Source: Amphiscolops sp. MND2022 (taxonomy: Eukaryota). Taken from it: DNA of 64,000 nucleotides. The notes under the pieces were generated by a model. It made no database searches. It was given only the letters and a program-made list of their open reading frames with translations, and had not been told where the DNA came from. Both the position numbers and the translations under genes were made by a program. The stretch spans positions 36,828,001 through 36,892,000 of the forward strand of contig OZ076414.1 in the NCBI GenBank assembly GCA_964187785.1, given 5' to 3'. Shown here in pieces: positions 7,787 to 53,013 of the stretch. The first letter of the stretch is position 1. Each line of letters begins with the position of its first letter.

Positions 7787-7918
7787 CTTCCCTATGGGGT
7801 TTCTTTTCTTTGCAACTGTCGTTCGTGTTTAATTGTTCCACAATGGATTTCGGATTAATTAGGATTAGGGAGAATATTGGGATAAATCCCTCCCTTCTGA
7901 TTGATTTCTAAGTGTTGA

Positions 7919-8170
7919 CGTTATGCCAACGTCGCATTTTTATTGGCCACGAAATAAATTATTTTGTTCGACCAAAGTTGTCAACGTTTTGCTGACGTCA
8001 ATTTCATTAGCCCTCAACTAACTTCTGAATTTGCCACCGTTTTGATGACGTCATTAAAGATTATAGGATTAACTTTTAACCCTGATAACTTTTTTGTCGG
8101 CGTTTTGCTGACGTCATTTCTGTTGGTAATTAGCCAACATTAGGTTTTGTCACCGTTTTGGTGGCATCAG
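7919..8170. promoter_or_regulatory. Five ~55-65 bp spaced CGTTTTGNTGACGTCA-type repeats between divergent ORFs (candidate bidirectional promoter)
   Basis: Units at ~7919, 7985, 8038, 8101, 8154; three contain a perfect TGACGTCA (CRE) palindrome; duplicated at ~11491-11742. Confidence 0.5.
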
Positions 8171-8229
8171 TTTCCAGTTGTTATTTTCATCTTGAGTTGT
8201 TTTTTCAGATTCTTTGCTATTTCTTGATA

Positions 8230-10700: not shown

Positions 10701-11358
10701 TTACCATCTCGCGAAGCGTAAGTTGCACCCGTGTCCTCTCCCGATTGCAATTCGTCTGCAAGTACATCCCAAACCGGGAGCGGGTTGTGACAGGGCCACA
10801 CTTCTGGAGAGAACGAAATTCCCAGGTTGGCGAGGCATAAGTGTCACAGAGGGCAAGCTCATCCCTAGTTCCGCTGTGTTGTCGATATTTCGTCTCTCTT
10901 CAAGATCGTTTAGAGGGCTTGTGGGTCTGAAGCTGATCTTTCTGGGTGTTCCCGGCGGCGTGCTGAAATAAGAGGAAGAATCCTCCTGTTGTACCTTTTC
11001 AAGGTATTCTGCTACCTTGCTGCTTGTTATCGACTTGCTTATCGAAGCTTTCGTATGGGCTTTCCAGGGAGTCAGCTATTATTTTTTCAGCACTTTCCGA
11101 AACCGGGTATTGTCCTGATTCCACTGTTTCGAAGCTCGTGTAGGATTCGCTAAGATTCATTCTTTTGCATTCAGTTTCCAGGGAGTTTAGAGAAAGGTCG
11201 AGAAATTCTTCCTCATCCGCAGTAGCTTCCGCCGCAACTATTCTGGGGTATACTTTGTTGTCCCTGGGTAACGGAGTAGAAGCTCTTGTGCTCTCGCCTT
11301 CCTCCTCGCTTGACGATGAGATGTCGATTAACTCGTATACATCTAGTAGATTATTCAT
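10701..11358 (-). pseudogene. Duplicate of accessory ORF 7129-7786
   Basis: Identical translation at +3572. Confidence 0.45.
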
Positions 11359-11801
11359 CTTCCCTATGGGGTTTCTTTTCTTTGCAACTGTCGTTCGTGT
11401 TTAATTGTTCCACAATGGATTTCGGATTAATTAGGATTAGGGAGAATATTGGGATAAATCCCTCCCTTCTGATTGATTTCTAAGTGTTGACGTTATGCCA
11501 ACGTCGCATTTTTATTGGCCACGAAATAAATTATTTTGTTCGACCAAAGTTGTCAACGTTTTGCTGACGTCAATTTCATTAGCCCTCAACTAACTTCTGA
11601 ATTTGCCACCGTTTTGATGACGTCATTAAAGATTATAGGATTAACTTTTAACCCTGATAACTTTTTTGTCGGCGTTTTGCTGACGTCATTTCTGTTGGTA
11701 ATTAGCCAACATTAGGTTTTGTCACCGTTTTGGTGGCATCAGTTTCCAGTTGTTATTTTCATCTTGAGTTGTTTTTTCAGATTCTTTGCTATTTCTTGAT
11801 A

Positions 11802-14800
11802 AGTTCACGTCCAAACACTCCCCCTATTGTTGATCCTGGAGCACAGAGCGGGCAGGAGACTCAGTATTTGTTCTCTGCGGGAGATGTGCGCCACGATGAG
11901 GGTGAAGACATCTGTCTGTCAGCAACCGGTAGGTTCATCATTCCATGATCCATTAAGCTTTTGTGTAATATACATATAGCAGTTAGACCTTTCCTGCCTT
12001 TGTATTTCCACACCTTAGATTTTCATGACGCGTCGATGATGGAATGTGAATTTTGTTTTAGTGCTTGGTGCGACAACTAATGCTCCTTCCATGCTTGTTG
12101 CTTCGTCTAACAGGAATACCGACGAACAGGTTACTGTTGCCGCTCCTTCTGTTCCCGACAATCCTTCGCCTGACGTTGTTCGTGGTGAGGCTGTTTGTTC
12201 GGCTTCTGGAAGTCAGGGGAATCTCCAATTTCTTGAAGCAATCGAGCCTACTTCAGGGGCTCAGCCACCTGCAGACGTAGCTACTCCCTCAATGGCAACC
12301 CAGCAGCATTCCCATGCTACTGAAGGAGGTAAAAATCTTCCAACCGCTCATCGTGAAGGCGATGAGGTTTGCCACCTCCTGAAAAAGAAGGGACGCCGCA
12401 AAACAGCAGAAACAGGTAGTGACAGTGATGTTTCCGAGGATGTTGCTTTGGCGGAAATGGCTCAAGGTGTTTCTGCTCTCAGCGGTCTGATCACGTCCGG
12501 GGCTGAAGATCAAAGTGTAGAACCTCTTGTGACTAGTAAGTGATTTTTTTCTTCTTTTTTTGTTTGTGGGTAATTTGAGTTAGTGTATTTCTGGGTTCTG
12601 TTTTGTTTGTAGGGTTGCAGGATCTTGTGTCTCGTATGGAGGCGAGCTTAGATAAAGCAGTCGTCATCATGTGCGGAAAGACATGGTTGGAGATCATCCT
12701 GTTATCAGTGTTTTTGTCAGTGGGTCCAGTACCGGAGTGGCTACCCGTTTTCATTGCATGATCTGTCGGCGTGATGTATCGATGCAGTCACATGGGGACA
12801 AAGAATTCACTCGTCATTACTCCTCGGACAGACATTGGGAGCGAGATGTTGCTTATCGTGTTCAGAACGATACGCCCACGTATGATCATCAGATGGAGCC
12901 TATGAACCTGTCGACCGGACAGCGCGATGAGTATATGAATCGTGAAAAAATTGCCAAGGATGAGGGATTTAGTTTCCCTGAAGACCTTTTACCTAGTTGT
13001 ACTCGCGTGGGATCTACTGTTCCTATGCTGACAATGGTGATTTGTATCGCTGAACTGTGTCGTTTTGGCTGTAGCTATGTGCTGTTGCGGAAAAAGTGGG
13101 GCAATTTCAGGGCAACCCTTGGACGCGAACCTCCCTTATATAATCTTCATTGGAATCGCTCCGAGACTTTATGGAGTATTTTTGGCATTGTTAGGAGTTA
13201 TGCGTAGAGGAGGGTGGGTAGGTGTTAATTGTATTTGACTGGTTGTTTTTTTTCTTTTTCTTCATTTTTCCTTATCATGTGATCTGTTTTGTTTCAGTCG
13301 TTAATTTGTCGTGCTCTTTTTCCTCGAGTCCTTCGATCTATGGTGTCACGAGTTGCAAAGTTCGGTCATTACAGTATGACGTTTGAAGAGCGGTCCGACG
13401 GGCAATATTGCTTTGTTCACACGTGGGAAGGCAATTCCTTGCTGAGTTTGTGTGTAAATGTGGAGAAGCTTGGTCAGCGTGTGCCACATGCCGAGTTGTC
13501 ATCGCTGTCTCGGGTGGTGACGAGTTTGCCTTCTGGGTTTATGCCCCTTAGTATCCGTGGTATGAGTCCGTCTTTTTTGCGTGTTGTTAGCGATGAGCGT
13601 TCAGATGGTCGTCGTTCCATCCTTGCTCGGGAATTCTCATCCAAAGTTTTCTTGCATTGTTATCGTGTGGCACATCAGGCGATCTTTGGAATGCTGGAAG
13701 TGACCACGATGATTGATTTCCTTATGCTGAGATTGCGTGGAGCTTTGCAGGAGCCCTGGATGGAGAATGTCGCTGAGTTGCGCCGAAGTGTGGTCGCTGG
13801 GCGGGTGACTTTTGACGAGCTTCGTGGAGTTGTGACTGATCTCGTGTCCGTGTGGGATACTGTTCGCGAGTACGTTCGATATACTGGTCCACGACATATC
13901 AAAAGTTCGTTCTTCTTTAATTTATTTTGCCCCTGTTTTTGTTTGTTTGTTTTTTTTGTTGGCTTGTGCTTCGTTTGATTTTCCTTGTGCGTTTTAGATG
14001 CGGGGTACAGACTGTTTGGTTAGTAGCGAGACGACGAATAAGCTTCGTTTGAAGTTGTTGCTTCATGTTCTGGATCTGTGTAAGTCCATTGCGTTGTGTG
14101 GTCGTATTCTACGTTGATTTTTGTTATTTGTTTCGTTGTTCTTACTTGATATGCTGACTGAAAACTGTGACTGCTTTGTTTGTATTTTCCATTGGTTCTG
14201 CTTTCTGTCATTGGGTTACTTGTTTAGATCATTGCACTTTCAAGAAGCAGAGGACAGGGCGGAGCGACTATAGTTTTCATACCTATAGTGAAGTCTGTCA
14301 ATTTGTCAACTGTCTCCTGACTCGCAGTCGGAAACTGTCGGGACTTCCAGAACTGAACGATTGGGGGGGCGTACATGGACACTTCTAAAGTGGCGCGATT
14401 GGAGAAGATTACCACAGCTGATTTCCTCTTGAACGATGACTTTGGAGTAGAGTTGAGTCAGTCTTCAAACAGTAAAGTTTGTGATTTTCGTAATCGCTGT
14501 CGCGAGTTTGCGGACCATCTTGTGAACGTCCTACTTGCCCAGCATGCAGTGTCTGCCAATTTTTCCTGTGGTATCTACTGTTTCTGTCCTGAGCTGTTGT
14601 TAGAGGGGGATGATCAGCGTGTCTTTCAGTTGTTCTCACGTGTAGTCCGTGTCTTGGAAAAAGTGGTAGTTTGACACCCAGTGTTGCCCGATCCAGCGTG
14701 GAGGAATTTACAACGTTCGTTGTGGATATCCGAAGGCGGCATGTCGAGTCAGGTTTGAGCGCCGAGAATATCAGCGATTTGGTGACGTACCTCTTAGGTG

Positions 14801-16043: not shown

Positions 16044-17709
16044 TCATTCCGTCATTTGTGTTTGTGACTTCTTGTATTTCCACTTATTGGTTAGGTTCCG
16101 TACTTTTTGTTGTCTCATGTTCGTCGATTTGCTTTCCGAAATCCATTTCCCAAGATACTGCGTACCATTCATTGTGTGACATTTTAACGTCTGGATCTGG
16201 TAAATATTCGTTAGATCGTACTGTGACGTCAGGTATCCGTTGGTCTGGCACGTAGGGCATATTCGAATTCTATGTAGCGTCTGTGTGTATCTCGTGCCAA
16301 GTTTTCGTATTGTGTAGTTGTTATTTGATAGTATTTTCATCACGATAAACGGTCCTGTCAAGATGCAATCTTGGAACGCAAACTTTGTCAATTGGTTGTT
16401 AGCTTTCGGGTTGAGGACATAGCAGTAGTCGTTTACTTTTAGCGGAGCTGCCGACGCTTTGCGGTCGTAATATTTTTTGTATTTGAGGTAAGACAGCATG
16501 ATATTGTTCTTTGCTGTCGCTCGCACTTTGTCAATTTGTTTTTGTAGCTGCTCTGCTATATCTGAGTTAGGTGTAGTTTTCCACTTTGTCTTGATGCGTA
16601 ACTTTAGGTCACGAACGTTGTAGGGTATGCGTCCATGGAATACCGTGGATGGTTCGCATCCTAGGGTTTCGTGATACGTTGTATTATAGTTCATGACTGC
16701 GATCTGAACATATTTGTGCCACATTGAACGTCTTTCTCCCGTCGATATTTTTAATGCAGTTTTGAATGAAGCGTGTGTCCTTTCCAGAATCTCAATCGTT
16801 TGTGCATGTTTTGTTGACGCATGGTTAATTTGGACTCGAGTATTTGTGTTATCTCTGTGACGACTTCTGACCTAAATTGTGACCCTTTGTCTGATGAGTT
16901 GGTAGGTATGCATGTCTTGTCATGACGTCGACAATGCATCGTCCAATTGTTTTCGCTGTGACGATCTGTGTTGGATATGCAAATAAATAACGTGAGAATA
17001 CATCGATCATTGTAACAATGTTCTGGTATCCCGCAGAATTTGGTAGATTTGGCAGTATGTCGATTTCGAGTATGTCTTCCGGTCCCAATACGTGTTCTGT
17101 ATTGTTAATCATTTTCGGTCGAATTTGATTATTGTTGATTCTTCTGTACTTGATGCAGTCTTCGCATTGCATTACCCATTGTTTGATTTTTTTTGCTTAC
17201 CCAGGGCAGTAGTTTTTCGATCTGCATTCTTGGATCATTTTGGTGATTCCCGGGTGCTTTTCCATTTGCCCATGAATGGCTTCCAGAAGTTCTGTGATCA
17301 GGTGTTCGGGGATTAATATTTGGTGATGTGTGACTTGTCCACATTCCCCGTAGTATTTGCGCATTAGGATTCCGTCTTTGACTATTAGCCTAATTTCGTG
17401 GACTAAGAGGCGTTTAGCTTTCGGGTCTGTTTGTCGGAGATGTTTATCAAATTCTTCACAGATCAATTTCCTCTTGATTGCCTTGAAGACCAAATCTGAG
17501 TCTTGTTCAACTCTGATGCGTGCGCTTTCTTTGATAGCCCCAAAGGTATATGATGCCTTGTTTATTGGGATTGGGGTTCTTTCTTTGATTGATAATTTTT
17601 TTCGTCGTCTATTCGTCGCGTGCATTCTGCCTTGCTTGTTCTTTCTGCAGCAAGATCTCTTCTTCGGTCTCAATCGTTTCTTCTGGGAGGAAAAAGAGTT
17701 GTTCTTCAT
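16044..17709 (-). pseudogene. pol: Integrase of element 1 (frameshifted)
   Basis: HHCC region (IHGQMEKHPGITK...CEDC), LEIDILPNL, MIDVFSRYLFAYP, SDKGSQF, YNTTYHETLG, GPF C-terminal region. Confidence 0.9.
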
Positions 17710-18225
17710 CTGCGACGTCTGTCGATTGTAGGTTTACTTGTATTGGTTGGGTTGTAATGTCGTTTCGGATTTTTAGTTCGACTCTTTCTTTAGGGTTGAG
17801 GTCAATTCTCGATAGGGAATCAGCTGCGGTGTTTTGCGTCCCGCTACTGACATGATGTGAAAATTGAATTTCAGTACGTAGTGACATGCATTCCAAAGTG
17901 TAGGGGGAATCTTTTTTGTTCAAAAAAACCTCGTTACTGATCTGTTGTCAGTCATTACAAGAGTTGGTAGGGTTGTTTCCCACAGTATATGGCTGTATTC
18001 TAAGAATGCGTGATAGATTGCCAGAAATTCTTTGCAATAGATTGACATCTTCAGTTGTGCTGGTGAGAATACTTTTGATCCAAATGCCACAGGAGCAAAA
18101 GTTTTTTTGGAATGGAGGTTTTTGTCATTCTCTTCTTCGATCATTAGCGCATATCCTGAGGCGCGAAAACAAGCGTCCGTCATTAGGACGTACTGTCGTC
18201 CTGTGATTGGTTGTTTGAGAGCCAA
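17609..18225 (-). pseudogene. pol: RNase H of element 1
   Basis: VLMTDACFRASGY, YCKEFLAIY, VMTDNRSV, AADSLSR. Confidence 0.9.
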
Positions 18226-20803: not shown

Positions 20804-22136
20804 TCAATTCCAACAACCTTCCATTTTGTGGGGTTTTCCACAAGTGTCGCATTTGGGCGGTTTGCCTGCACTGTAATTGGTTTGTCCGTTATTTTTCCAA
20901 GTTTGCAGCCATTTATCGCGTTTCAATTTCCTGCATTCGGCCTTGTGGTGTCCGAATTTGTTACAATAGAAGCAGTATCCTTTTTTGGTGTTCTGCGTCG
21001 TGTTCTCGACTTGTTTTGTCTCTGATTTTGTTTGAGCCGGTTCTATTTTATTGAGTTGTACCATAGTTACTTCATCTGGCGCTCCAAGGCCGTTAAGTCT
21101 CATTTCTCGCTCCAAATGGAGTGCGATATCATTGTATGGTTTGTCCTCGAGATACGCCCTGTTGAGGATTTTCTTTACATGATCTGGCATTTTCGCGTAG
21201 ATTGCTTTGTCAATAAATTGTTGGGCTTCCAAACCGAAAGCTTCTTTGGCAGTTTTTTGAAGTACGTCCAGAAATTCATGTAGTTTTTGTGTTGCAGGAT
21301 CAAATTTGAGTCAGTCCCACTCGCATCTGGCTTTTGCCATTGACAGATAATCTCCAAATCGACGTTTAATTTCGTCATTATTTCGTCTAACAAGTCCTTC
21401 TTGGAGTCCACAATGTTGCAGAACGCCTGGAGGTCGTCTCCTCTTAGCAACGAGTGAAAGTAGTTGATTTTTTTTGGTGTTCCGTGAGGTGCGGGTACAT
21501 TTTTATGTTGTTACGGAACAAGTCTTCGAAGAGTTCAAATTTGTCAGATTTCCCATCGAAAGTTGGGAGTGATGCCGTTAGGGCCTTCGGCATAGGTAGT
21601 GTGGTGGAGTCAATCTTTTCTGCTCCGAATAGTGTTCTGGCCGCCGTTGGACGTTCTTTGGCCGCTGGTTGACTCTGGGACCTTATTTCCGTTCTTTTTG
21701 GGTGGTTTGTGGAGTCGGTTAGGACTCCTGACACCATGTTACGACTTACGTTCGTGTCGTTGTTTTGAGTAGAGTTTATCCTGACAATTTTAGTAGGAGT
21801 GTAAAATTTCCTCGTTTCAATTTCTACTTCCTCTTCTGTATTTTCTCTTTCGTTCTCCCTGGTTTCAGGTCTTAATAGCTTCAACATCTCTTTCTGGGAT
21901 TCTACGAGCAAACTCCTAATTTCAGAAGTAATTTCTTCCTTCAACGAAGCTCTAAGACTTTCCAAAAAGCTGTTCTCAATTCTAGGGGATTTTGGTCTCA
22001 AAGGACCCGCAACACTTACGTCCTGCTCAAGAGGACATGAATTCTTTAGTTTTATTGGGGATACGAAACCTTCACTAACACATTCGGTGCTCTCCTGTTG
22101 ATTGTTCCTTCTCTTTTGACTTCTTGTCGTTGACAT
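20804..22136 (-). pseudogene. gag: Gag of element 1, starting inside the 5' LTR (MSTTRSQ at 22136), two CCHC knuckles
   Basis: LPTFDGKSDKFELFEDLF; CFYCNKFGHHKAEC and CDTCGKPHKMEGC; frameshifts at ~21445 and ~21200. Confidence 0.85.
21724..21736 (-). other. Primer-binding site, tRNA-Leu type (TGGTGTCAGGAGT)
   Basis: Immediately follows LTR end ...GTAACA; complementary to the ACUCCUGACACCA 3' end typical of eukaryotic tRNA-Leu(CAG). Confidence 0.8.
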
Positions 22137-23684
22137 ATTGGTGAATAAAGTTTGTTTCTCGAAGAATTCAATTTTGTCTTTTCTGATTTTAGACAGAGTT
22201 GAAATTGAGATGAGGTTTAAGCAAAACAAGTTGAAACAACTGAATTATAGCGCTTGAAAAAGACTGAGTCCCTTAGCACTAGCAACCCATCATATTTATA
22301 CCATCCTAGCATCATTTGATCACGAATAAACCGCTAATTTTCCTCGAACAATTAGTCATTTCCTGTATTATTGATGAAAAATTCATTTTGTTTTCAAATT
22401 TGCGTCGACTTTTTGTCAAATTTTGAGACACGACGACTTTAATCTAGCATTAGTCAACAACCATGATCATATCATTTCATTCCGGCGTCCTTCCGTTTCC
22501 TCCCAGGCAGGAAGTAGATATTACTTCAGTCTGTCAAACTGGAAACATTTCCCTCTTTTACTGCTTTGGTTCGTAAGAAACTGACGCTGGGATGACGCTG
22601 ACGTAAACAACTATTACCTGACTTTGAATTTTCACTTGAAGAAAATGCCATGACTAATGTTTTCAACATTGGAATTCCTAACGATGCTAGGAAGGGATAG
22701 TGGCAAGATTATAGAATTAGCGAAAACATCCAAATTAATTCTAAACTGAGTGATTATTAATTAGCGGATTGAAAGCAGTGGGACATAGACGCTTGTTGAA
22801 CGGGAAAACTGGATTGTTCATTTCAGAACTCTGCTCACGGTTATTGGTACTTTGACTGAACGTACTAATAAGTGACATAATGGCGTTAATTTAATATTCA
22901 TACACTTTAACAATAGAATGTCACTAGATATTACTTCACACATATAGTAATATTCTTGAACGCAAAATGGCTGACGACATAACGTCGACACTTTATAAAT
23001 TAGTCAAAGAAACAAAACTTCAAAACTTTTTAATATCTAACTTCAGTATTACGAAACATATAGTAGCAGCGTTAATCAATCGCTCATGGCACAATGCATA
23101 TGAGAATAGCTTTTTGTCAACCTGAGTTAACGCAAAAACTTTGAATAGATAATTGCTTGATCCTGGAGTGGACGACGACAAGCCATCGTCTAAATGAGCA
23201 TTGATGAATTACAACTTGTACATTAGGTAGTATAAAATACAAAAACACAAACATGTAAAAATACGTTTCCAATACGAAAATACTTCCAATCTATTTTCAT
23301 TATGATTATAAACTGTGTCTTTCAGTTATATTACCTGCAAAATTCCATTTCAGAATGAAATCTTAATGTTGCGTCCTATTTAACGGATGGATGGCGCTGA
23401 AATCGAAATCTCTTATTATTTTCCTTGTTAAGTTAACATGCTATTCAAACGCATTCCTTGCACCAGTTCGTTAGGATAGTTTCCATTTTGTCATTTTGGA
23501 TAGACTAGGATAGCTTTTTTTAATGGATTTTGGATGTAACGTGGACGTAGGTGTTAGTATTGGACCTAGTCTACCAGTATAGAGGACGTAGCATGGACGT
23601 AAAATTGGAATGAAATCTAGCTAGCCGCCATAGCTGTGACGTCATATTGCCGTCTGATTTGGAATACTTTCTAACTAGCTAACT
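21737..23684 (-). repeat. 5' LTR of element 1 (homology to the 3' LTR ends at 23684)
   Basis: Colinear with 4701-6674; diverges after ctaactagctaacta. Confidence 0.8.
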
Positions 23685-24535
23685 ACATTACAGATGTAGT
23701 CATAGTAACCACGTCGTGTAGTGGTTAATTGAACGGCATTAGAGACCAATGAATGAGGTAAGAAACTTCGGTGAGGCAAGCGAGAGGAAGTAATTCTATT
23801 CATGCTGTCATAGTTCTGCGTCGGACAAGAGTAAACAATGATCTGATGTGGTGAGTGTGGCCACGTCATTCGGTCGTGCGCTTTGTAGTGAAGAGTACTG
23901 TTAGTCGGAAGTAGGATTGGCCGGAATTCAAATTAACTGGGCAGCGTAATCGATTGTTCGGCTAAATCGGACTAATGTAGAATGAAATGTAAATGAGTCG
24001 TGCATTAGCAAATAAAAACTTCGTCGATGCCAAATACGAGTTGAATGAAACAGTAATTCCAAAGTAGCTTTGAATTTTACATCGATTGGCAGTTGTTAGT
24101 TGTACTGCGGTATACCAGGTGGAAGTAAATCGCGTCGTGGAAAAACAAAACACAATTCAGTGATGACGATTAGTTGATCCAATCATCAAATAAGGGTTGG
24201 TAGATAGGTGGCCATCTGGATTGTTTTCTAAATTTGTTTAACCAATAAGGTGTTGAGCCGTAATAATCATTCAATCGTGCAATAAACGTAAGCGATCTGA
24301 TATTGATCGAACCATTGAGTTCTTTGGGTACGTGGGCAATTGAGGTAGAATTCGAGATATGCGATCGCACTCTTTTTGACGAAAAAATTTTTTGTTTCAC
24401 CTCTTAATTGACGTGGTTGATCAATCCACACCAATCATGTCGTGAAAACTCTGAAGGCTAGTAGATCGCATTTGTTTCTGTGGCAGATTGAGAGACAGAA
24501 CCGATTGTATTTCTTCGTATCATTATCGTTACGTC

Positions 24536-25411: not shown

Positions 25412-25660
25412 TATAGTATAGTATAGGACGAGTTTGTTGGCCAGCTTAAATCGGCCATGCAAGAGGTCTCTTATGCTTGAGTTGCGCCAGCGGGTGGTCT
25501 GGAAGGCGATACTATGGAACTGACAATGACTCCTACTCGGCCGTCCATAGTGCCACGAACTCACTACAGAATCAGTCTCTGCTCTGACTATTCTTTCACG
25601 ATTTAACTCTGATCTTCTGTAACTCTTTGTCGATTCATTCGAATTACTTTCCCTTCCCCA

Positions 25661-26907
25661 ATGCCTGCAACCAGAAGCACTGGTGGAAACAGTGACGACA
25701 CTTCAAAGATGGAAAATACCACTGCTGGTGATGATCTCACAAAAGTGAAACAATCCCGCTCCACTCAACGAGGGGTCGCGACAAAGCTCATGAAGCGCAT
25801 GGACGAACTGCTTCAACAAGCCCAAGATGCAACCGACAACTTGACTGCCGTTCAACAACTTCGTGGTTGCTACGAGAGGTTCGTTGACAAAATTGCTCTT
25901 TTGTCACGGTTGGATCAACAACTGCTCACTCTCTTGCCCGATGACGAACGCTCAGAGGAACAGGACTCTTGCTTGTGTCTCATGGAGGAGCTTCAGGAAA
26001 AGCTAGCGGAGGTGAAGTACGTGGTGCAACGTCCTACCTTGTCTTCTCCACCTGCCGTCACTGGATCAGCTACTCGTGTGAAACTCTCCAAACTTGACCT
26101 GCCTCTGTTCGACGGTAAGTATGCGAAATGGACTTCATTCTGGGATCAGTTCAATGCCTCCGTTGACGCCGAACCTTCTTTGGTCGACTCGCAGAAGCTC
26201 AACTACTTGAAACGTGCACTGCGGGGGGAGGCTTCCAAGGTGATCTCAGAGCTCTCTATAACCGATGACAACTACGCTGCAGCTCGTGCACTTCTTCAAG
26301 CTCGTTTCGAGAACAAGCGATGCATCATGCGAGCACGCTTCCAGTCCCTTCACATCTACCCTGCCCTCAAGATGGAGAACGCAGCTGGTTTGAGGAAGTT
26401 GCAAACAACGATGATGGAACATATTGTGGCACTGCGCAATCTAGGCGTCAATGAAGATCATCTACTGGTCTTTCTCTTTGCTGAAAACCTGGATCAAGAA
26501 ACCAGGGAGCATTGGGAGTTGCATGCACCCAACGAGGTAAATATTTCTGAGTTGCAAAAACTTGATGATCTTCTTACCTTTCTAGAAACTCGTGTTCGCA
26601 CTCTAGAGGTAACTACTCTCAAGTACATCTGAGAGTTCCAAAACCCAGACGAAACCACAATCAACCAACCAATCCTACCTTGGAGCCCAATCGAAACCCT
26701 GTGCAGTCTGCAACACTTCTGGACATCCGATTCACAAGTGCTCAGCCTTTAATGAGATGACAACTGTTCAGAGGTCAGACAAGGCTCGTGATCTGGGTTT
26801 GTGCTTCAACTGTCTCTCTTCTGGCCATCGTCCGAAGTCCTGCCAAAGCAGCAAGACGTGTCGTACATGCAGTAGGAAACATCATAGCTTGCTACACAAG
26901 GATTAGC
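25661..26907 (+). pseudogene. gag: BEL/Pao gag (DUF1759-like) with zinc knuckles
   Basis: LSKLDLPLFDGKYAKWTSFWDQF, SQKLNYLKRALRGEA; after a stop at 26632: CAVCNTSGHPIHKC, CFNCLSSGHRPKSC, CRTCSRKHHSLLH. Confidence 0.9.
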
Positions 26908-26987
26908 AGCCACTGGAACGCAATGGGCTTGTCAACAACTCTACACCCATTGTAACTACTCAAGGTGACCTCAGTACTATTCAAATA

Positions 26988-28446
26988 ATGGCTCGTGACA
27001 GGCATGATAAATGGGTCAACCTGAGAGCACTTCTTGATTCTGGCTCAACGGTGATCGTCATGACCACCCAGGCAGCCCAGCGGCTCGGTCTACCCACAAA
27101 GCGGACAGCAGCGACATACACTTGGATAGCGCGCAGGCGCATGCCTCGTCACTCAGCGGTAGTCACTCTGGACCTGTACTGTCTCTGCAAGGAGCAACTA
27201 CTAACTACAACTGCTCTGGTTCTCAAAACGATCACCTATGATCTACCTTCACAGACCATCAATGCTACTGAACTCACTCAATTAGCTGGTGTGCAAATGG
27301 CCGATCCCATGTTCCACACTCCTGGTCCAAACGATCTCCGCATTGGTATTGATCTTTGTGAATCAATTGTCCTTTCTAACAAGTTTCACCTTCAACCCAA
27401 GCTTTATGCAAGAGAAACCATGTGCGATTGGGTCCTCAGCGGTTCGCAACACTCAACCGCAAGCTGGTTCAGTCAGACCACCTATCTACTGCTTCCGACT
27501 CTTGCTCTGAGCAATCACTTCACGTCGCTCTTGCTCTTCATTCATTATCAACTGATGTCTCTTCTGTCGATCGGCTTTTGACTCGCTTCTGGGAAATCGA
27601 GGAGGTGCCTGGCGCTGGATCGGATCCATGCAATTCACCCCTGAAGAGCTGCAATGCGAAAACTTCTTCACTCAAACGACGTCTAGGACAGCTGATGGGC
27701 GCTACGAAGTGGAACTACCCTTCAACTCAGATGCACCTCCAATTGGTGAAAGCTTCAATCAGGCGAAGCGACACTTTCTGGCACTGGAGAGACGACTCCA
27801 GTCTACTGGTCTCGAACAAAAACTCACTGACTACATCAATGGATACAAGGATGCTGGTCACATGGAACGAGCCCCAACTGAGGATCTCGATAAACCACAT
27901 CATCAAGTTTTCTACCTTCTCCGCCACAATGTGATGAAGGATAGTTCAACACACAAGCTTCGCGTTGTCTTCGACGGCTCCGCAAAGTCTTCGTCTGGCT
28001 GGTCCCTCAACGCCTCAATTCTAACTGGTCCTACTCTGCAAGACAGTTTAACTGATATTTTGCTTAGGTTTCGCTTCCACACAATAGCTCTCTGTGCTGA
28101 GAAGATGTACCGTCAAGTGTGTTTGAAGCGAAGCAGCAGGGACTACCAACGACTTCTATGGCGCGATCAGCCTGGTGAATCAATTGAGGTGTGGCGCATG
28201 ACCCGTGTCACGTTCGGCATTCGATCTTCTGCTCACCAAGCTGTCAAGGCTCTTCAATCTACTGCCCACGAGCATCATCATCCGCTAGCAAGCCCAGTCA
28301 TCCTGCGTGACTTTGTGGTAGATTACATGATTTCTGGCGCCTCTTCACTCAAAGACGCAATCCAACTTCAGGACGCTCTTCAAAAAACCTTAAAATCTGC
28401 TGGCTTCTGCCAATATTCCCGCAGCGGTCCAGCATCTACCTCCTGA
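26988..28446 (+). pseudogene. pol: BEL/Pao protease and reverse transcriptase (frameshifted)
   Basis: LRALLDSGST; KLRVVFDGSAKS, SLNASILTGPTLQ, EKMYRQV, RVTFG, degenerate YVDD (FVVDY). Confidence 0.9.
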
Positions 28447-28552
28447 CCTCCAGGAAGCACCCAAGGCGCACGAATTTCACGACGACAACTACCAAACGAA
28501 AATTCTGGGCGTTCGATGGCTTCCTCTGCTGGATGTCTTCACCTTCACAGTA

Positions 28553-30909
28553 GTGAACAACGTCGATCCCGAATCAATCAAGACTAAACGTCAAACGCAT
28601 TCCGATATTGCAAAGCTATATGATCCACTGGGGTGGTTTTCTCCTCTTGTAATCACTTTAAAGGTCTTAGTGCAACAGACCTGGATAGCTGGAGTAGACT
28701 GGGACGACGAGGTTCCCGCAGCAATCCTCAAAACTTGGCTCTCAGCTCGAAAAGATCTCCCGGCCATCTCAAGCCTTTCTATACCCAGATGTGTGCTTGT
28801 TTCCTTAATTGCACAATCAACAGTGGAGCTGCATGTGTTCTGCGATTCCTCCGAGACAGCATTCAGTGCGGTTATCTACTCTCGTGTTTCATCCAGAGAT
28901 ACCTCCTATTTGGTCAGTCTACCTACTGCTAAGTCAAGAGCGGCTCCCGTCAAGACTCTCAGCCTACCTCGCCTCGAGTTCTCCGGTGCATTTCTAGCTG
29001 CAAAGTTGGTACAGTCAACTACTCTAGCTCTTTCCAAGCTCAGCGTCAACGTTTCTCATGTCAAGGCCTGGACGGATTCTACAATAGTTTTATCTTGGTT
29101 AGCGAGTTACCCAGAAACCTGGGGTTGTTTTGTTGCTAATCGCGTGTCTCTAATTCAAGAACAGGTTGCTCCTTCACAATGGAAGCATGTTCTTTCTGAA
29201 CAGAACCCTGCTGATTGCACTTCACGAGGGAAAACCGCGAAGACCTTCTGGACTTCAACCTGTGGTGGAAGGGTCCTGACTGGCTAGCGCATGATGAAAC
29301 ACCATGGCCTAAACAACCGATTCTTCCAATTGCTGCACCTCCAGAGCGACGCAAGCGTGCAGCTGGCATTTTTCATCTACAACCCAAAGGACATCGGCCA
29401 ATGATTGGAGTTGACCGTTTCTCGAACTTGGACAGGCTTCAGAGAGCAACAGCCTATGTGATGCGATTCATCGACTATTGTTGTGGTTTGGACATAGCCA
29501 AGGGCCCTATGCAACAATCGGAGCTCGTCATGGCACAGCTGAAGCTCCTAGATCTTCGCCAGAAAGAGTATTTTGGCACTGAGCTTGATATACTTCGAGC
29601 GCGCACGCGCAATTATTCTGGACGATTACTCGCACTCGGCCCCTTCTTCGACGAAGAAACATCCATCCTCGGAGTTGGGGGTAGGCTGGCCCAGGGTTCG
29701 TACTCTCCTGACATGACTCACCCAGCACTGGTTGATGACAACTCTCATCTAGCAGTTCTACTCATTCGGAAAGCCCATCGAATTCTTCTTCACGCTTGTC
29801 CCCAAGCCACTCTTTACGAACTCAGATGACAGTACTGGATTCTAGATGGTCCTCGCAGCGTACAGCAAGTGATACGACAATGCACGACCTGTCGTCGCTT
29901 CATGGCAAAGGCTGAGACTCCCTGGATGGCTAACCTTCCCTCAGAACCGATAACACCTAGTCGCCCTTTCACCAGAACTGGTTTAGACTTTGCTGGTCCA
30001 CTACTTATCGAAAGGCCAATGTCTAAGGCAACTCAGAAGGCTTATATTTTAATTTTTGTATGCTTCTCAACCAAAGCTATTCACATTGGGCTAGTTTCAG
30101 CACTCACCACATCCGCATACATTGCCGGTCTCAAGCGGTTTGTGTCTCGACGAGGTCTTCCTTGTACTATCTACTCAGACAATGGTACTAACTTCATTGC
30201 TGCCTGCAACGATTTGACGGCACTGTAGGGACTTCTTAACACGGGCTGCGACTCCTCCTTGACGTCCTACGCAGCGAGCCGAGGTGTTGAATGGGTGACA
30301 ATTCCTCCAAGGTCACCTCACTTTGGCGGTCTATGGGAGGCTGCTGTCAAATGTTGCAACACTTTACACCGACGTGCAATTGGGCAACAGATTCTCACAT
30401 TTGAGGAGCTCTACACAGTTCTCACAAAGATAGAAGCAAGCCTCAATTCTTGGCCTTTGTCCACCATGTCTTCTGATGCCAACGACTCAGCTGTTTTGAC
30501 ACCTGGTCATTTCCTAATAGGTTCATCTCTTCAGTCACTTCCTTCTTCAAAAAGTACTCGGAAGCGCGCTGCAGAACCTACTCTCCAAACTCGCTGAAAG
30601 CTGGTTCAATCAATCATCGACACCTTTTGGGATCGCTGGAGCAAGGAGTTTCTCTCTAACTTTCAGCAACGGACTATGTGGAAGGCTGACTCCCAGCCCC
30701 TCAATGTTTCTGATCTGGTACGCATCAAAGAAGACAAGACACCTCCGCTTCAATGGGCTCGAGGACGCATTCTAGATGTGTACACTAGCAATGATGGAGT
30801 CGCACGAGTAGCTCGACTCAAGACTCTAAGTGGAATCTACAATCGTTCAATTAACAAGCTAATCAGGCTGCTACTAGAAAATGAAATCACGCCTGAGTGT
30901 GACCAATAA
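28553..30909 (+). pseudogene. pol: BEL/Pao RNase H and integrase
   Basis: KLYDPLGW, HVFCDSSETAF, TLSLPRLE, AWTDSTIVL; H...CTTC, GLDFAGP, SDNGTNF, GLWEAAVK, LTPGHFLIG, FWDRWSKEFL. Confidence 0.93.
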
Positions 30910-33698
30910 AAACAATAATCACAAATCTGGCTTCGTCATGACCAACCCATTTCCATTCCCTTGCCTGTGTTTGAATAAAAATTCAGCTGAATATATTTTG
31001 TTGAGTGCGCATACGCGCATCTTACTGACCCTCTGTTATCTATTCAAAATTTGTTTCCTTTTCTCTTTTTTGTTATTTCTCCTCCTGAACTACGCGTTCA
31101 GGGCGGCCTGTGCTTCATACATGTTGCCTGTACTCAACTATGGTAGTAAACAATGCGTGAATCAAAAACATTGATGGTGGTGTCAATATATTTCCCTTTG
31201 TATTCATCTATAATACAATCTCAACGGTACAAAAAAACTTACTACTCTGAAAGTCTCTTGGAGTTGTCCCTACAGAACCGCCTCTTCCTCTTTGGCAACC
31301 TTCTCCCTTTGGATAGAGACAACTTGCTGGACCCTTGCGTTGTTGGACGAGTGAACTCATCATCTGTCTTGCTCTGACTGTCCATTCTCACTCACTTCAG
31401 AAGCGCCTGTGTTCTGGATGTCTCAGTATCGTCGTCGATAGAAACATCAACAGTCAACAAATAAGAATGCACAATTGACGCAGCGCAGTGCGCACAACCA
31501 GGAGGCAAGTAGATCACTTCTCCAGGCCTCTGAACGCAACACATGACACCTCTTGGAAGACGACGTTTAACCCTGTTTGCCCATGTGAGGACATCGCGCT
31601 TCGTGGATCGCAACAACTCCACCAGGTTCCGCTGCCCACTCGCCACGAACCAGAGCTTACAACCGTGTTGCAGGTGAGACCACGAAGCCCTGGTACGGGG
31701 ACGCAGATCAGCATACCACTGGCTGAAGGACAGCCCACTCTGCTCATTCGGAAAGCCCATCGAATTCTTCTTCACGCTGGTCCCCAAGCCACTCTTTACG
31801 AACTCAGACAACAACACTCGATTTTAGATGGTCCTCGCAGCGTACAGCGATTGATACGACAATGCACGACCTGTCGTCGCTTCATGGCAAAGGCTGAGGC
31901 TCCCTGGATGGCTAACCTTCCACAGAACGGATAACACCAAGTCGTCCTTTCTTCAGAACTGGTTTAGACTTTGCTGGATCACTACTTATCGAAAGTCCAA
32001 TGTCTAAGGCAACTCAGAAGCCTCATATTGTCATTTTTGTATGCTTCTCAACCGAAGCTATTCACATTGGGCTAGTTCCAGCACTCACCACATCCGCATA
32101 CATTGCCGGTCTCATACGGTTTGTGTCTCGACGAGGTCTTCCTAGTACTATCTACTCAGACAATGGTACTAACTTCATTGGTGCCCGCAACGAATTGACG
32201 GCACTGTAGGGACTTCTTAACACGGGCAGCGACTCCTCCTTGACGTCCTACGCAGCGAGCCGAGGTGTTGAATGGGTGACAATTCCTCCAAGGTCACTTC
32301 ACTTTGGCGGTCTATGGGAGGCTGCTGTCAAACATTGCAAGACTTTACACCGACGTGCGATTGGTCAACAGGTTCTCACATTTGGGGAGCTCTACACAGT
32401 TCTCACAATGATAGAAGCAAGCCTCAATTCTCTTCCTTTGTCCACCATGTCTTCTTATGCCAACGACTCAGCTGTTTTGACACCTGGTCATTTCCTAATA
32501 GGTTCATCTCTTCAGTCACTTCCTTCTTCAAAAAGTACTCAGAAGCGCGCTGCAGAACCTACTCTCCAAACTCGCTGGAAGCTGGTTCAATCAATCATCG
32601 ACACCTTTTGGGATCGCTGGAGCAAGGAGTTTCTCTCTAATTTACAGCAACGGACTAAGTGGAAGGCTGACTGATCTGGTACTTATCAAAGAAGACAAGA
32701 CACCTCCGCTTCAATTGACACAAGGACGCATTCTAGATGTGTACACTGGCAATGATGGGGTCGCACGAATAGCTCGACTCAAGACTCTAAGTGGAATCTA
32801 AAATGGTCCAGTTAACAAGCTAATCAGGCTGCTACCAGAAAATGAAATCACGCCTGAGTGTGACCAATAAAAACTATAATCACAAATCTGGCTTCGTCAT
32901 GACCAACCCATTTCCATTCCTTTGCCTGTGTTTGAATGAAAATTGAGCTGAATATATTTTGTTGAGTGCGCATACGCGCATCTTACTGACCCTCTGTTAT
33001 CTATTCAAAATTTGTTTCCTTTTCTCTTTTTTGTTATTTCTCCTCCTGAACTACGCGTTCAGGGCGGCCGGTGCTTCATTCATGTTGCCTGTACTCAACT
33101 ATGGTAGTAAACAATGCGTGAGTCAAAAACATTGATGGTGATGTCAATATATTTCCCTTTGTATTCATCTATAATATAATCTCAACGGTACAAAAAAACA
33201 TATTACTTTGAAGGTCTCTTGGAGTTGTCCCTACAAACTGCCTCTTCCTCTTTGGCAACCTTCTTCTTTGGATAGAGACGACTTGCAGGACCCTTGCGTT
33301 GTTGGACGAGTGAACCCATTATCTGTCTTGCTCTGTCTGTCCATTCTCACTCTCTTCAGAAGCGCCTGTGTTCTGGATGTCTCAGTATTGTCGTCGATCG
33401 AAACATCAACAGTCAACAGAGAAGACTGCACAGTTGACGCAACGCAGTGCGCACAACCAGGAGGCAAGTAGATCACTTCTTCAGGCCTCTGAACGCAACA
33501 CATGATACCTCTTGGAAGACGACGTTTAACCCTGTTTGCCCATGTGAGGACATCGGGCTTCCTTGATCGCAACAACTCCACCAGGTTCCGCTGCCCACTC
33601 GCCACGAACCAGAGCTTACGTCCGTGTTAAAGTTGAGACCACGAAGCCCTGGCACGGGGACGCAGATCAGCATGCCACTGGCTGAAGGACAGCCCACT
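29758..33698. repeat. Diverged tandem duplication (~1.98 kb: 29758-31739 and 31740-33698) covering integrase, 3' UTR and the 3' half of the JmjC gene
   Basis: Junction cagcccact|ctgctcattcggaaagccc at 31739/31740; copies differ by many substitutions and a ~21-bp indel near 32672. Confidence 0.92.
31260..31739 (-). pseudogene. Partial duplicate of the JmjC gene (HxD mutated to YxD; 5' half absent)
   Basis: SFSQWYADLRPRTRASWSHLQHGCKLWFV...VQRPGEVIYLPPGCAHC; stop at 31392. Confidence 0.8.
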
Positions 33699-34109
33699 GT
33701 TCCACATCAACTGAGCGTCAACTAGCTTGCAATGGGACCTTTTTGCAGCGTCGATATCGAACGAAATGTCTTGCAGAGCCTGAAAATAGTCAGCTTCGTC
33801 GTTCTTCGGATATCCTCCCTTCAAGAAGACTGTACTCTCCAGATGCTCGCTGCCATGATGAGTGTTCGCAAAATCGAATGAAGCTTCAATCATGGACTGG
33901 CTTGAAGCAGCTGTCGTCACTCCTTGTATGACATCATCAGTGTACCTGACAACTGGACCCCCAATCAACGCTGGCTCCTTTGCTGTGGCTTCCACCTCCG
34001 TCACAGTACATCGCCTGAGACGATGATCCGCTATGGCTTCGCTGATCACCCGCTCGAAAATAGCGAAGGCTCCGGAAACGTTCGAAACTGTTTGGTTTTT
34101 CAATGACAT
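33231..34109 (-). pseudogene. JmjC-domain 2-oxoglutarate/Fe(II) oxygenase gene (~292 aa, one in-frame TAA at 33627-33629)
   Basis: ORFs 33627-34109 and 33231-33605 are in one frame; motifs WHAD (HxD), W-x4-GRKLWF, VQRP(E/G)EVIYLPPGCAHCV (distal His); the other copy has CAA (Gln) at the stop position. Confidence 0.85.
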
Positions 34110-34170
34110 TTTGGTCTGAAACTCATTTACAAGTTATATACTTTGCACCAGTGTTGCAAGGCGGCCGGTA

Positions 34171-34448
34171 TGTTCACTGATTCAATTATGTTTACAAACT
34201 TTTTTATTTGATTGACACTCACATGATACAAAAAGTGCATATATTGATTAATGTATCTGTTTACATACTTGAAGATCTGAAGAACTCATAATTGACTGGT
34301 GTTGTATGTAAATACTCCATTCTTTAACCGTACTCCTGAACTTTCTCACTTTTTTATAAAAACCACCACGGCAGCAAGCACCTTGAATTCATTATTGCAA
34401 CATTAACAGTTTTCATCTTAGTTCAACAGTTTAGTTGATCACTAAACA
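34171..34448 (+). repeat. 3' LTR of the BEL/Pao element (278 bp)
   Basis: Starts TGTTCAC right after GGCGGCCGGTA, ends CTAAACA; no second copy in the window. Confidence 0.65.
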
Positions 34449-37049
34449 GGATCTGTAGTTTGTTCGGGCGACGTGTCGGTTTCAAGTCGCCATGGATCAT
34501 TAGTGCCTTCTGCATTCGGTGATGGCATGTCCGTGGAGTATTTTTCGTGTATTCCGACTACTGCTGCTACAAAACCTGGTAAGAAAACTCATAAGATCAT
34601 GGGAGCGGTTTTAGTGATAATTGTTTTACAACAAACGAGGGTTAACAATCATCGTTTTTTTGTAGGTGATCTTAGAAGGTGCAGAACTATAGTAAACATT
34701 GTCGCTTTTAATTGTTATGGTTGTTGTAGTTCGCTCACGGAAGATCAAGACGCTCAAACCGTCCTACTTCGTTTCTGGTGTGGTGGGAACTTTCTTGGGC
34801 TTCCCACGTCATAAGCGTGTTGTGGACGGCTTTGCTCGCTGTTTGTTATGCCGAGTAGACCTCAGTATTGCTGTGCGCGGACTGTCCTCCTTGTGGGATG
34901 GGATCATTGGAAAGGCATCGAGCACACAAGGTTGGAGCAAAAGTATAGAATCATGACACGGAATCCTTTATTGGACAAATCGTGTCGGCCCGTGAGTGCT
35001 GAAGAGGATCGGCGTATCAGACGGGCGCGCATGAATGAACCGCCAGTGACGTTGGAGTCTGGGCTATCGTTAACTGTGGAGGAAAGAATTGCGATTGAGG
35101 AGGCCCAGGAGGAAGAGGGACAACGTCCACATTTATCAGACGGAAGTGTCAGTTACCTGTGGCTGTGTTGTTTCATCAACAGTTTCGCGAATGTGGCTAC
35201 TTTCGCTGATGTTCTGCGCTTGGTAGACGCTTGACGGGAGTGTACTGCGAGTGAGCTGCGATTTGAGTGTCGCACGTTGACTTATCCTCGGTGTCAGGTA
35301 TGTATCGAGTTTTTTTCAGTTATTGTACGAAGCTGTTTGCCTGACGTTTGCTGTAATTTTTGCGTGTTGTATGATATTGAAACAAAATTGTGTTATATGT
35401 TTTTTTGTTTTTTTTGTAGATTGATACCGTTGGTTGAGTGTTGTTCAGAGTTTGGTGTTGTACGGGTTGTACCCTTATGTGGTAGAACAAATGGACCTGT
35501 TACTTGGAAGTTGTTCCTGTGCTGGAATTAGTGTTTGGCGTGATGGTTCACGGTGGCGAGCAGAGTTCCACGTCGTTAGTGAACATCGTGTCCAGTCAGT
35601 TGTCGTGGCCGTAGTTAGAGACTGTGCCGAATGGGAGCGGCGTCTGGTCGACAATGTGGTTCCTGTTCTGGCGTGCTTAGACGGAAGAAATCGGCTCAAG
35701 ACGATTTCTGTAGGAAGTGATAGTCTGGTGTGCAAAGCAGTCCGCGCGACAGTCAGTCCAATCAACCTGTTCGTAGCTGGGATGGTGAACCGTGCTACTG
35801 TGTTCCGAGAAGTTCAACGCCAGTTCAGGACAGAGCTTGCGGGTCTGGACCCTTTGAGCGTATTGCAGTATTTGCGTGTGCGTTTGATGTCTGTGTCTCA
35901 AGAGCGTTTCTTAGACAGACTACCTCATCTTCGTCAGATAACTAACTGTAAAGAAGTTGTTACTGTTTTTTTTTGAAAGAAGAAAGGGGTTGTGGGTGTG
36001 GGATACCTTGCTATGTTGGATTTTCACTGGTGTTGGCGTTTTGTTGCTAGTATATACGATCAGAAGTGGACGACGTTTTGGAGCTGGCAAAGACGTGTGC
36101 GGAAAAGGTCGAGTATTGGAACCACTTGACTTTTTATTTCGGAACAAACAGGCCTAACATAACCTCAAAACTTCGTGTTATCACGCCCCTGGAAAAGCAG
36201 TTCTTCGATGATGCGATGATCCGCCCGCGTTTTGCAGTTCTGCGTCTGGTGCTTGATTTGAGTGAGTATAAGGTTGGACAATTTCGGCGTCTGCTGATAT
36301 TTTTTGTTATTTTTATTTTGTTTTTTTTTTGCTTTAGACTTATGTTTTTTGATGTAGTTATTCCCGAATTGTTGCTGTTTTGGGTTCTACTTCAATAGGG
36401 TTTGTTTTAGTGGTAGAACACTGTGGTCGTCTTTGTGGGCATGGACGTGATCGTCAATTGGTTATTGAAAGAGAGTCAGCCCAATTCCTACGCGGTGTTA
36501 TGCAGTTTGTGTATCCGGCGAATAGTATTCCTGCTGAATTCGAAGTGTCGACGATACTAAAGCCTGTGGATGTGGAATGTGCAGAGATTGATACGAGTCT
36601 ATACCAACTACATTTCGGATAATTTTTCCGTTTTGACATTAGCACCCAACTACCGTTCTTTTACAAGTCTGCGCAGAAATTATTAGTCGGGCTTTGCGTT
36701 GGATTGACCAGAACATGGCAGCGAGAGTGGCATATGTACTTGAGCTTCACGCCTTTTGATCCAGTTTTGATCCACAGTGGTTCGGACGATCGACGTGTTG
36801 ATGGCAGTTGAGACTTGTGCCGCTTTTACCTCTCATGGATTACTGGAGACTTGTGACAGTGGGCTAGTTCAGCAGCAGTATCTAGAGGTTACTCAGTTTT
36901 TCAAACGTCGTTGGACTGCTGTGCAAGATGAAGTTCCTGTTGTTGAAGACATCTTTTCGATGTGGATGGCCTATCCACACTGGGAGCGTTGCCTGCAATT
37001 GAGACGTGTCCTGGATCTGGTTATTGGACTGACTATTACCAGTAGCTAC
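34449..37049 (+). pseudogene. Antisense spliced cargo gene (BED-like finger, hAT-like) assigned to element 4, 5' part
   Basis: Introns 34579-34665 and 35298-35419 (GT-AG, T-rich); ARCLLCRVDLSIAVRGLSSLWDHWKGIEH; LYPYVVEQM...AGISVWRDG; CLQLRRVLDLVIGLTITSSY at the insertion point of element 3. Confidence 0.6.
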
Positions 37050-37393
37050 TAAAGTACTTGGTTGTTATTGTTATTAAGTGTTGAGAGGGAATTAGGTCTT
37101 TTATCTGGATTACGATTAGTACTTTAAGAGACGCTAACAGAGCTGCAGTTATTAGGTCTTTTTGGTGAAGACAACTATTCGATGAAGAATCAATTCAAGT
37201 TGTGTTGTACAGATTATAATGTATGGTATTGAATATAAAGTAGTTACATCCGACAATTCATTTTACATCCAGAATATTAATTGAGTACATTCATAAATGA
37301 TGTGCACTGTTCTAAAGTCTAGACATATAGAGGTTGGGGGATAATTATAAATCATGAGATATTTGGTATATTAATATCATCTGGTATATCATC
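37050..37393 (-). repeat. 3' LTR of element 3
   Basis: Matches 52671-53013 with roughly a dozen differences (about 96%). Confidence 0.93.
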
Positions 37394-52670: not shown

Positions 52671-53013
52671 TAAAGTACCTGGTTGTTATTGTTATTAAGT
52701 GTTGAGAGGGAATTAGGTCTTTTATCTGGATTACGATTAGTACTTTAAGAGACGCTAACAGAGCTGCAGTTATTAGGTCTTTTTGATGAAGACAACTATT
52801 CGATGAAGAATCAATTCAAGTTGTGTTGTACAGATTATAATGTATGGTATTGAATGTAAAGTAGTTACATCAGACAATTCATTTTACATCCAGAATATCA
52901 ATTGAGTACATTCATAAATGATGTGCACTGTTCTAAAGTCTAAACATATAGAGTGTGTGGGATATTATATATCATGAGATATTTGGTATATTAATATCAT
53001 CTGCTATATCATC
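52671..53013 (-). repeat. 5' LTR of element 3
   Basis: Direct repeat of 37050-37393. Confidence 0.93.

Follow-up and report, generated by a model that had tools for sequence, protein, structure and literature searches.

A 64,000-nucleotide stretch of the Amphiscolops sp. MND2022 genome (contig OZ076414.1, positions 36,828,001 to 36,892,000; the whole stretch is called the window here) holds a copy of a BEL/Pao long terminal repeat (LTR) retrotransposon that carries, on the strand opposite to gag-pol and between pol and the 3′ LTR, an open reading frame (ORF) for a JmjC-like protein. The predicted fold of this protein family and all of its cofactor-binding residues are those of the JmjC oxygenases, and we consider it almost certain that JmjC is a real cargo of the family as a whole. 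Judged from its substitution pattern, the gene has evolved under purifying selection and has been as constrained as pol. The copy in the window is a dead, rearranged BEL/Pao element; it is a fossil, and the biology resides in its intact relatives.

Results

The antisense ORF

An earlier note on this DNA, made from the sequence alone, had called a 292-codon minus-strand ORF with JmjC motifs and placed its ATG 61 bp from the LTR of a BEL/Pao element. Translation confirms the ORF (Table 1) with its motifs QWHADL, HGRKLWFVA and QRPEEVIYLPPGCAHCVAS, the distance is exact, and the Pfam gag and pol domains agree with the element class. The cofactor motifs are WHAD, which holds the His and Asp iron ligands, GRKLW with the 2-oxoglutarate Lys, and CAHCV with the third iron ligand, and all three residues of the iron triad are kept. 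From the motif set given in the note, WHAD, GRKLWF and the third ligand stand and the glycine of QRPG does not, the glycine of QRPGEV being replaced by E in the window copy. The minus strand reads 160 codons, a TAA, 131 further codons and a stop, a length well beyond chance at 47% G+C and conserved in more than 14 other copies.

The damage is larger than the ‘single nonsense change’ first described. Compared with other copies, the ORF has also lost 1 nt near 33267 and 1 nt near 33236, which puts the last ~12 codons out of frame and removes the conserved basic C-terminal tail. The codon at the position of the TAA is CAG or CAA in 12 other copies and CGG in one, the remaining stretches not reaching that codon; a shared or programmed stop was rejected, the TAA being private to the window copy. 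No long sense-strand ORF overlapping the JmjC gene was found.

JmjC identity of the protein family

The note had also proposed a JmjC fold with iron and 2-oxoglutarate ligands, to be checked by hidden Markov model and structure; relatives of the window ORF pass the Pfam cut-off, the structure matches JmjC, and an alignment of 27 members agrees. With the Pfam JmjC (PF02373) gathering threshold at 24 bits, P0021, P0029, P0026, P0057 and P0007 score 29.4, 25.8, 24.6, 24.3 and 24.1 bits. When an 18-member family profile was compared with the sequences in PDB, only JmjC proteins matched (ceKDM7A, E 5e-5; JMJD6, 1.3e-4; PHF8, 1e-3), and in these matches HxD, Lys and His are aligned, the iron triad with those of ceKDM7A and JMJD6. 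An AlphaFold2 model of the intact natural homologue P0001 reached a predicted local distance difference test score of 74 and a predicted template-modelling score of 0.73, and each of the 50 best Foldseek matches of this model in PDB, with E values from 3e-9 to 2e-7, is a JmjC protein. VIA-align gave Z scores of 13.2–14.7 overall, the highest for PHF2 (14.7 over ~227 residues), followed by PHF8 and ceKDM7A (14.4), JMJD5 (14.2), FIH (13.9) and KDM2A (13.7). Among AlphaFold DB clusters, 21 of the best 30 carry a name, and 20 of those 21 are JmjC, cupin-like or kin, at identities of 16% or less.

The 27 members share only ~20–25% identity, and W145, H146, D148, G163, K165, W167, Q207, H221 and V223 (P0001 numbering) are invariant or near-invariant among them. 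The iron triad H146, D148 and H221 is at least 90% conserved; K165, which lies in a G-x-K-x-W motif, is near-invariant and aligns with the corresponding Lys of ceKDM7A and JMJD6, and most members have Ser or Thr at position 143. The C-terminus LPKRKRKFCR.NSK is conserved between members that are 52% identical, and basic tails are also found in distant clades; we take this basic tail to resemble a nuclear localisation signal. Intact members are probably active oxygenases.

Distribution and linkage to the element

The gene is not confined to one copy. In a DNA search of the 1.07-Gb genome from which the window comes, the JmjC region turned up in at least 14 more copies, 82–92% identical. The LTR recurs 5.7–6.8 kb upstream of such copies, and in those that were fetched gag-pol is preceded by an LTR and followed by the antisense ORF, the 61-bp spacer and a second LTR. 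The search for copies with paired LTRs and target-site duplications that the note had suggested returned several, with 5-bp duplications: L036 (LTRs 100% identical, AGGTG), L037 (99.66%, ATAAT), L038 (100%, ACTGC) and L039 (98.3%, AGGTT), joined by L051, whose 291-bp LTRs are 99.66% identical, whose target-site duplication is AAGGC and whose gag and pol are both intact. In all five the JmjC ORF lies between pol and the 3′ LTR, inside the target-site duplications. L051, together with L055 and L056 below, was taken from a public assembly near-identical to the window’s genome (96% identity on P0021), through which two families were studied, one at 52% identity with open frames of 339 residues and one of 293 residues. 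At L040 (G000:C7:3063500-3073300), locus positions 6753-8788 hold an internally deleted derivative of the window family, a non-autonomous short form in which an LTR at each side encloses 81 bp of leader, the integrase end and a truncated JmjC region, with the JmjC end of the element retained.

Intact genes sit in intact elements. In three other assemblies, at L050, L058 (from a record labelled marine metagenome) and L059, P0001 (299 residues) has as its neighbour a Pao polyprotein of 1744 residues that is itself intact, and P0007 (326 residues), 52% identical to P0001, lies intact in L051. L059 has the layout of the window, LTR, 67-bp spacer and ATG, and L059 and L051 are clean exemplars. L050 was rejected as a complete element: its left 652 bp are unrelated, and its right end runs via the LTR into a JmjC-deleted variant, which at L050:7398-7688 keeps the JmjC ATG and 16 nt and then continues with sequence 3′ of the JmjC stop.

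A profile search of 1.84 billion representatives found 38 proteins or clusters in all and no close cellular homologue. The surroundings of six of the 38 were read, placing three in Pao elements and leaving three unresolved, and the window’s genome itself has at least 131 matches to P0001. A contig of an NCBI assembly (L057) was rejected as Pao-linked, its neighbour not being Pao. Two loci of the P0021 clade (L060:6042-11976 and L053:3132-9645) have the JmjC gene in a ~5.9-kb unit with 326-bp direct repeats ~5.6 kb apart, and no pol of any kind was detectable in either; this unit may be a non-autonomous LTR element. A SET-domain match beside the gene in L053 (frame 3170-3634, E 0.015) is weak and was treated as chance.

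Selection and co-divergence

The note had named neutral evolution, with a ratio of nonsynonymous to synonymous substitution rates (dN/dS) near 1, as the outcome to look for. Between lineages the values are far from 1 and point to purifying selection: comparing the P0001 lineage (L050) with the window family gave 0.10–0.15 for JmjC and 0.15 for pol, the JmjC ratio being approximate because dS, at 1.0–1.5, is near saturation. The JmjC differences in the same comparison fall 37/33/91 on the three codon positions. Within the window family the JmjC ratio is 0.25–0.42, and among near-identical intact copies it is 0.41–0.85, from only 12–16 JmjC substitutions, with 0.29–0.60 for pol. The pol/JmjC identity pairs of five elements are 79/77, 66/52, 62/49, ~40/25 and 91/91 percent. 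From these five elements only, we infer one old acquisition followed by co-divergence with pol.

Genes inside LTRs and a possible priming motif

The distant P0026 clade has at least 63 matches in the window’s genome (E < 1e-30), with many open 293-residue frames, and these matches are often paired ~7 kb apart. In L055 and L056, ORFs of 274 and 309 residues, ~25% identical to P0001, lie in antisense wholly inside the LTRs of Pao elements (Table 1); the LTRs are ~1.6 kb long and 98–99% identical within each pair. The ~7-kb pairs across the window’s genome arise because the JmjC ORF lies inside both LTRs. An ORF inside the LTR therefore means two gene copies per element and would leave one in a solo LTR. 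L055:6751-9027, which adjoins the JmjC-bearing LTR on its outer side, is a 758-residue frame with RVT_1 and PHD_Pygo matches, another retroelement with a chromatin-reader-like domain.

A motif of 10 nt that reads ACCGGCCGCC on the JmjC strand is present twice in the window family, together with a small hairpin, and flanks the JmjC segment on both sides. L055 and L056 have a single copy, in the pol-proximal place, where it marks the inner LTR edge (L055:11005-11014). The choice of plus-strand priming site may, on the position of these motifs, decide whether the gene is internal or within the LTR.

The spacer upstream of the ATG has TATATAA 31 nt and TTTCAG 7 nt before the start codon. TTTCAG (window 34116-34121) is invariant, 4–7 nt before the JmjC ATG, across three lineages (L037, L038, L059 and L051), with TTTTAG in L055, and looks like a 3′ splice site. 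GTGAGT (window family) and GTAAGT (L051) are candidate 5′ donors in the LTR; the L050/L059 family is without a donor and has the palindrome TGACGTCA at that place, and we do not claim a 5′ splice donor or an intron.

The element in the window

The window element is collinear with LTR-flanked genomic copies whose internal region begins at the equivalent of 25547-25550, and its Pfam domains are DUF1759, Asp_protease_2, Peptidase_A17 (Pao, E 1e-44), rve and DUF5641. The BEL/Pao order, gag (DUF1759) and then pol with the peptidase_A17 signature, integrase (H2C2, rve) and DUF5641, is found in it and in the intact relatives L050, L051, L055, L058 and L059. Its 3′ LTR starts TGTTCACTGA and ends CACTAAACA, and matches both LTRs of L031 and L034-L039 as well as the 5′ LTR of L043, where the stretch is part of a longer repeat. 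Public DNA runs give contigs that either span 34421-34700 or part at 34448/34449, in keeping with an LTR end. No 5′ partner of this LTR was found within the window, and the window copy thus lacks the paired LTRs of its relatives.

The 1.98-kb tandem duplication of the element spans mid-integrase to JmjC codon ~137, repeating part of integrase, and is not present in the other genomic copies compared. It accounts for the ‘second partial copy’ that the note had placed at 31260-31739: the fragment exists, from about 31270, and instead of an independent copy it is the end of the duplication. The fragment reads WYADL for WHADL, so that a Y replaces the first iron-binding His, has one stop, and keeps the basic tail in frame.

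Table 1 Coordinates of the element, its antisense gene and associated features (window numbering unless a locus is named)
Feature	Position	Strand	Remarks
BEL/Pao LTR retrotransposon copy	25547..34448	+	without 5′ LTR; internal duplication; pol in many frames
gag (DUF1759)	25661..26632	+	Pfam PF03564, E 6e-30
pol: protease, reverse transcriptase/RNase H with Pao peptidase_A17 signature, integrase, DUF5641	26988..30909	+	at least 7 frames
1.98-kb tandem duplication	29757..33698		units 29757-31739 and 31739-33698, 93.5% identical (self-BLAST, repeat search)
Partial JmjC copy	31270..31739	-	codons ~137-298; ends at duplication junction
ACCGGCCGCC motif, pol-proximal copy	33063..33072	-	between pol end and JmjC stop; short inverted repeat after it
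Antisense JmjC-like ORF	33231..34109	-	292 codons; TAA at 33627-33629; ATG at 34109
Spacer, JmjC ATG to 3′ LTR	34110..34170		61 bp
ACCGGCCGCC motif, LTR-adjacent copy	34160-34169		in spacer; touches LTR; plus-strand-primer region
3′ LTR	34171..34448	+	278 bp; TG...CA; set by comparison with other genomic copies
JmjC-containing LTRs, L055	L055:9078-11003, 16467-18078
JmjC-containing LTRs, L056	L056:2850-4527, 9497-11167

Other features of the window

A 3.57-kb unit is tandemly duplicated in positions 5709-12855 (5709-9283 and 9280-12855, 99.8% identical), and 4701-6673 matches 21737-23685 at 92.7%; both probably belong to another retroelement. A 344-bp direct repeat (37050-37393 and 52671-53013), its copies 96.5% identical and separated by 15.6 kb, may represent the two LTRs of a large element; between the copies G outnumbers C very strongly, with a skew of 0.45–0.67 (38-52 kb).

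Discussion

A possible role for the gene

We propose that the element carries an accessory gene, set opposite to gag-pol between pol and the 3′ LTR, whose product would be a ~300-residue nuclear Fe(II)/2-oxoglutarate oxygenase. An antisense promoter within or beside the 3′ LTR would give an mRNA that reads inward and converges on gag-pol, and the protein would be imported into the nucleus by its basic tail. There it would oxidise a methylated or hydroxylatable target to the benefit of the element, the likeliest being methyl-lysine on the histones over the element, which would counter silencing by heterochromatin. Action in trans would leave copies without the gene still mobile. Taken as a whole, with the mechanism included, this is our best explanation, and we give it about an even chance. 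Histone demethylation against silencing, as the specific role, falls somewhat short of that, and a hydroxylase role is nearly as likely. The fullest version, in which an animal BEL/Pao radiation encodes its own histone demethylase, expressed from an antisense LTR promoter, imported into the nucleus and erasing marks in trans, with the gene part of the LTR in one clade and the choice of primer motif able to move it into or out of the LTR, is put forward tentatively.

Besides the near-saturated dS, several results weigh against this explanation. Scores below the Pfam JmjC cut-off, in the range 16.6-22.8 bits, include those of the two window pieces (16.6 and 19.7), P0001 (20.7) and L037 (22.4), whose 230-residue frame is the longest natural frame of the window’s own family in the window’s genome. 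No other Pfam domain, whether PHD, CXXC, JmjN or another reader or targeting domain, was found in any member, the proteins being 245–326 residues long, and JmjC-only proteins are mostly hydroxylases and not demethylases. In structural similarity the two classes are tied, PHF2/PHF8/KDM7 at Z 14.4–14.7 and JMJD5 and FIH at 14.2 and 13.9. What points to an antisense promoter is position and short motifs. Searches for sequencing runs found only four with the sequence, all from one study and none recorded as RNA; on 29500-34700 they give short DNA unitigs that confirm the LTR end and flank junction only. The JmjC frame is broken in all 15 same-family copies examined in the window’s genome, the window’s included. 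The youngest copies (L036 and L038, with LTRs 100% identical) bear C-terminal JmjC deletions and the gene is therefore not needed in cis for transposition; one such deletion is common to L038, L039 and L040, so it has spread, and a JmjC-deleted derivative is also visible in the L050 sample.

The gene thus seems to be decaying in the window’s own family in the window’s genome, and this is where a neutral passenger has to be considered, that is, a host JmjC fragment transduced once and hitch-hiking ever since, with the window showing its decay. The broken same-family copies and the spread of deletions would fit such a history, as would the dN/dS of 0.25–0.42 within the family and of 0.41–0.85 among near-identical copies, the latter from few substitutions. 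It would leave unexplained the intact frames in at least five diverged Pao lineages, the between-lineage ratio of 0.10, a divergence concordant with that of pol down to 25% identity, the many open 293-residue frames in the window’s genome, and the lack of a close cellular homologue among the 1.84 billion representatives. We disfavour the passenger reading and hold it to be very unlikely.

In a further alternative the protein is of minor importance and the antisense unit serves the host or limits the element itself, either as a source of double-stranded RNA or small-RNA precursors, made by transcription from the 3′ LTR through the pol-distal region, or through a protein that represses copy number. 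The gene is convergent with gag-pol in every clade and copies without the ORF have still transposed, both of which speak for such a unit, but the ORF does not overlap pol, and a role as RNA only would explain neither a dN/dS of 0.10, as low as that of pol, nor catalytic residues kept to ~20% identity together with a tail like a nuclear localisation signal. This alternative we regard as improbable.

The nature of the enzyme is harder to decide, since the predicted structure does not separate the subfamilies, KDM7/PHF-type demethylase and JMJD5/FIH-type hydroxylase. The proteins could be active JmjC-only hydroxylases, similar to JMJD5, JMJD6, JMJD7, FIH or TYW5, whose substrate would be a protein or RNA of the host or of the element (a splicing, translation or transcription factor, for instance, or Gag or integrase), modified in favour of expression or replication of the element. 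A minimal ~300-residue protein without reader domains would suit this, JMJD5, FIH and TYW5 are all within 1 Z unit of PHF2/PHF8/KDM7, JMJD6 is the second-best match of the sequence profile, and the only 2-oxoglutarate oxygenase described from an LTR retrotransposon targets RNA and not chromatin (PMC9289625). However, the best profile match and the top structural matches are KDM7/PHF-type demethylases, and the tail that resembles a nuclear localisation signal fits a nuclear target without discriminating between the two. A hydroxylase in place of a histone demethylase is a possibility that we take seriously while thinking it, on balance, less likely than not.

If the enzyme does act on chromatin, it would be an eraser of silencing marks encoded by a mobile element, and if it is a hydroxylase, it would mean a new host-factor dependency of BEL/Pao elements. 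The LTR-embedded version is an unusual gene-carrying LTR, and intact, truncated and JmjC-deleted elements provide natural controls in one genome.

Comparison with known systems

Histone and DNA methylation are the main means by which hosts silence retrotransposons, and a few transposons carry DNA-methylation writers or readers, anti-silencing factors, or an RNA demethylase. With the cellular JmjC oxygenases (KDM7/PHF8/PHF2 and KDM2; JMJD5, JMJD6, FIH and TYW5) the family described here shares the predicted fold, at Z ~13–15 over 190–235 residues, the HxD...H triad, and the fourth-strand Lys (about 15–19 residues after the first His) and the Ser/Thr three residues before that His, which together bind 2-oxoglutarate. 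It differs from them in being at most 16% identical to any solved or AlphaFold DB protein, in having no partner domain and in being encoded by a retrotransposon.

In position and orientation there are viral parallels. HBZ of human T-cell leukaemia virus type 1 is an antisense gene that is transcribed from the retroviral 3′ LTR and encodes a bZIP regulator, and sag of mouse mammary tumour virus is a gene inside the LTR that encodes a superantigen. The JmjC gene follows the same logic: its start lies in or beside the 3′ LTR, it reads inward on the minus strand, and in the L055/L056 clade the whole ORF is within the LTR. HBZ and sag are not enzymes, however, and both are proven to be transcribed from the LTR, whereas for the JmjC gene we infer it.

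The slot between pol and the 3′ LTR is also used by others: plant LTR retrotransposons have additional, often antisense, ORFs there (PMC7264820), and bdelloid LTR elements have extra ORF3s (PMC5408684), most of them without a recognised fold or catalytic motif. The terms ‘JmjC’ and ‘dioxygenase’ are both absent from the bdelloid paper (PMC5408684) and from a review of retrotransposon accessory domains. The earlier note had known of no JmjC-carrying BEL lineage, and full-text searches of the literature likewise gave no account of a retrotransposon with a JmjC gene or of a transposon-borne JmjC enzyme.

Epigenetic modules have been acquired by retrotransposons and kept under selection elsewhere, as DNA methyltransferases in dinoflagellate and charophyte retrotransposons (PMC5890265) and as a methyl-CpG-binding domain in arthropod Copia elements (PMC6673714). 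Those are writers and readers of DNA methylation, mostly fused to the polyprotein or co-oriented with it (PMC5890265, PMC6673714), whereas the gene here is separate and antisense, and its product a putative eraser or hydroxylase. An oxygenase is also carried by Phalaenopsis Ty3/Gypsy elements, whose extra ORF encodes an AlkB-type 2-oxoglutarate dioxygenase, an N6-methyladenosine RNA demethylase active in vitro (PMC9289625). There, too, an Fe(II)/2-oxoglutarate oxygenase has become fixed in an LTR lineage and is proposed to counter host surveillance of transposons (PMC9289625). In contrast to the orchid case, the present enzyme is JmjC and not AlkB, comes from an animal and not a plant, is carried by BEL/Pao and not by a 25-kb Gypsy element, is encoded in antisense and in one clade within the LTR, and is known here from sequence. 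The finding extends a known pattern, the capture of epigenetic and oxygenase modules by retrotransposons.

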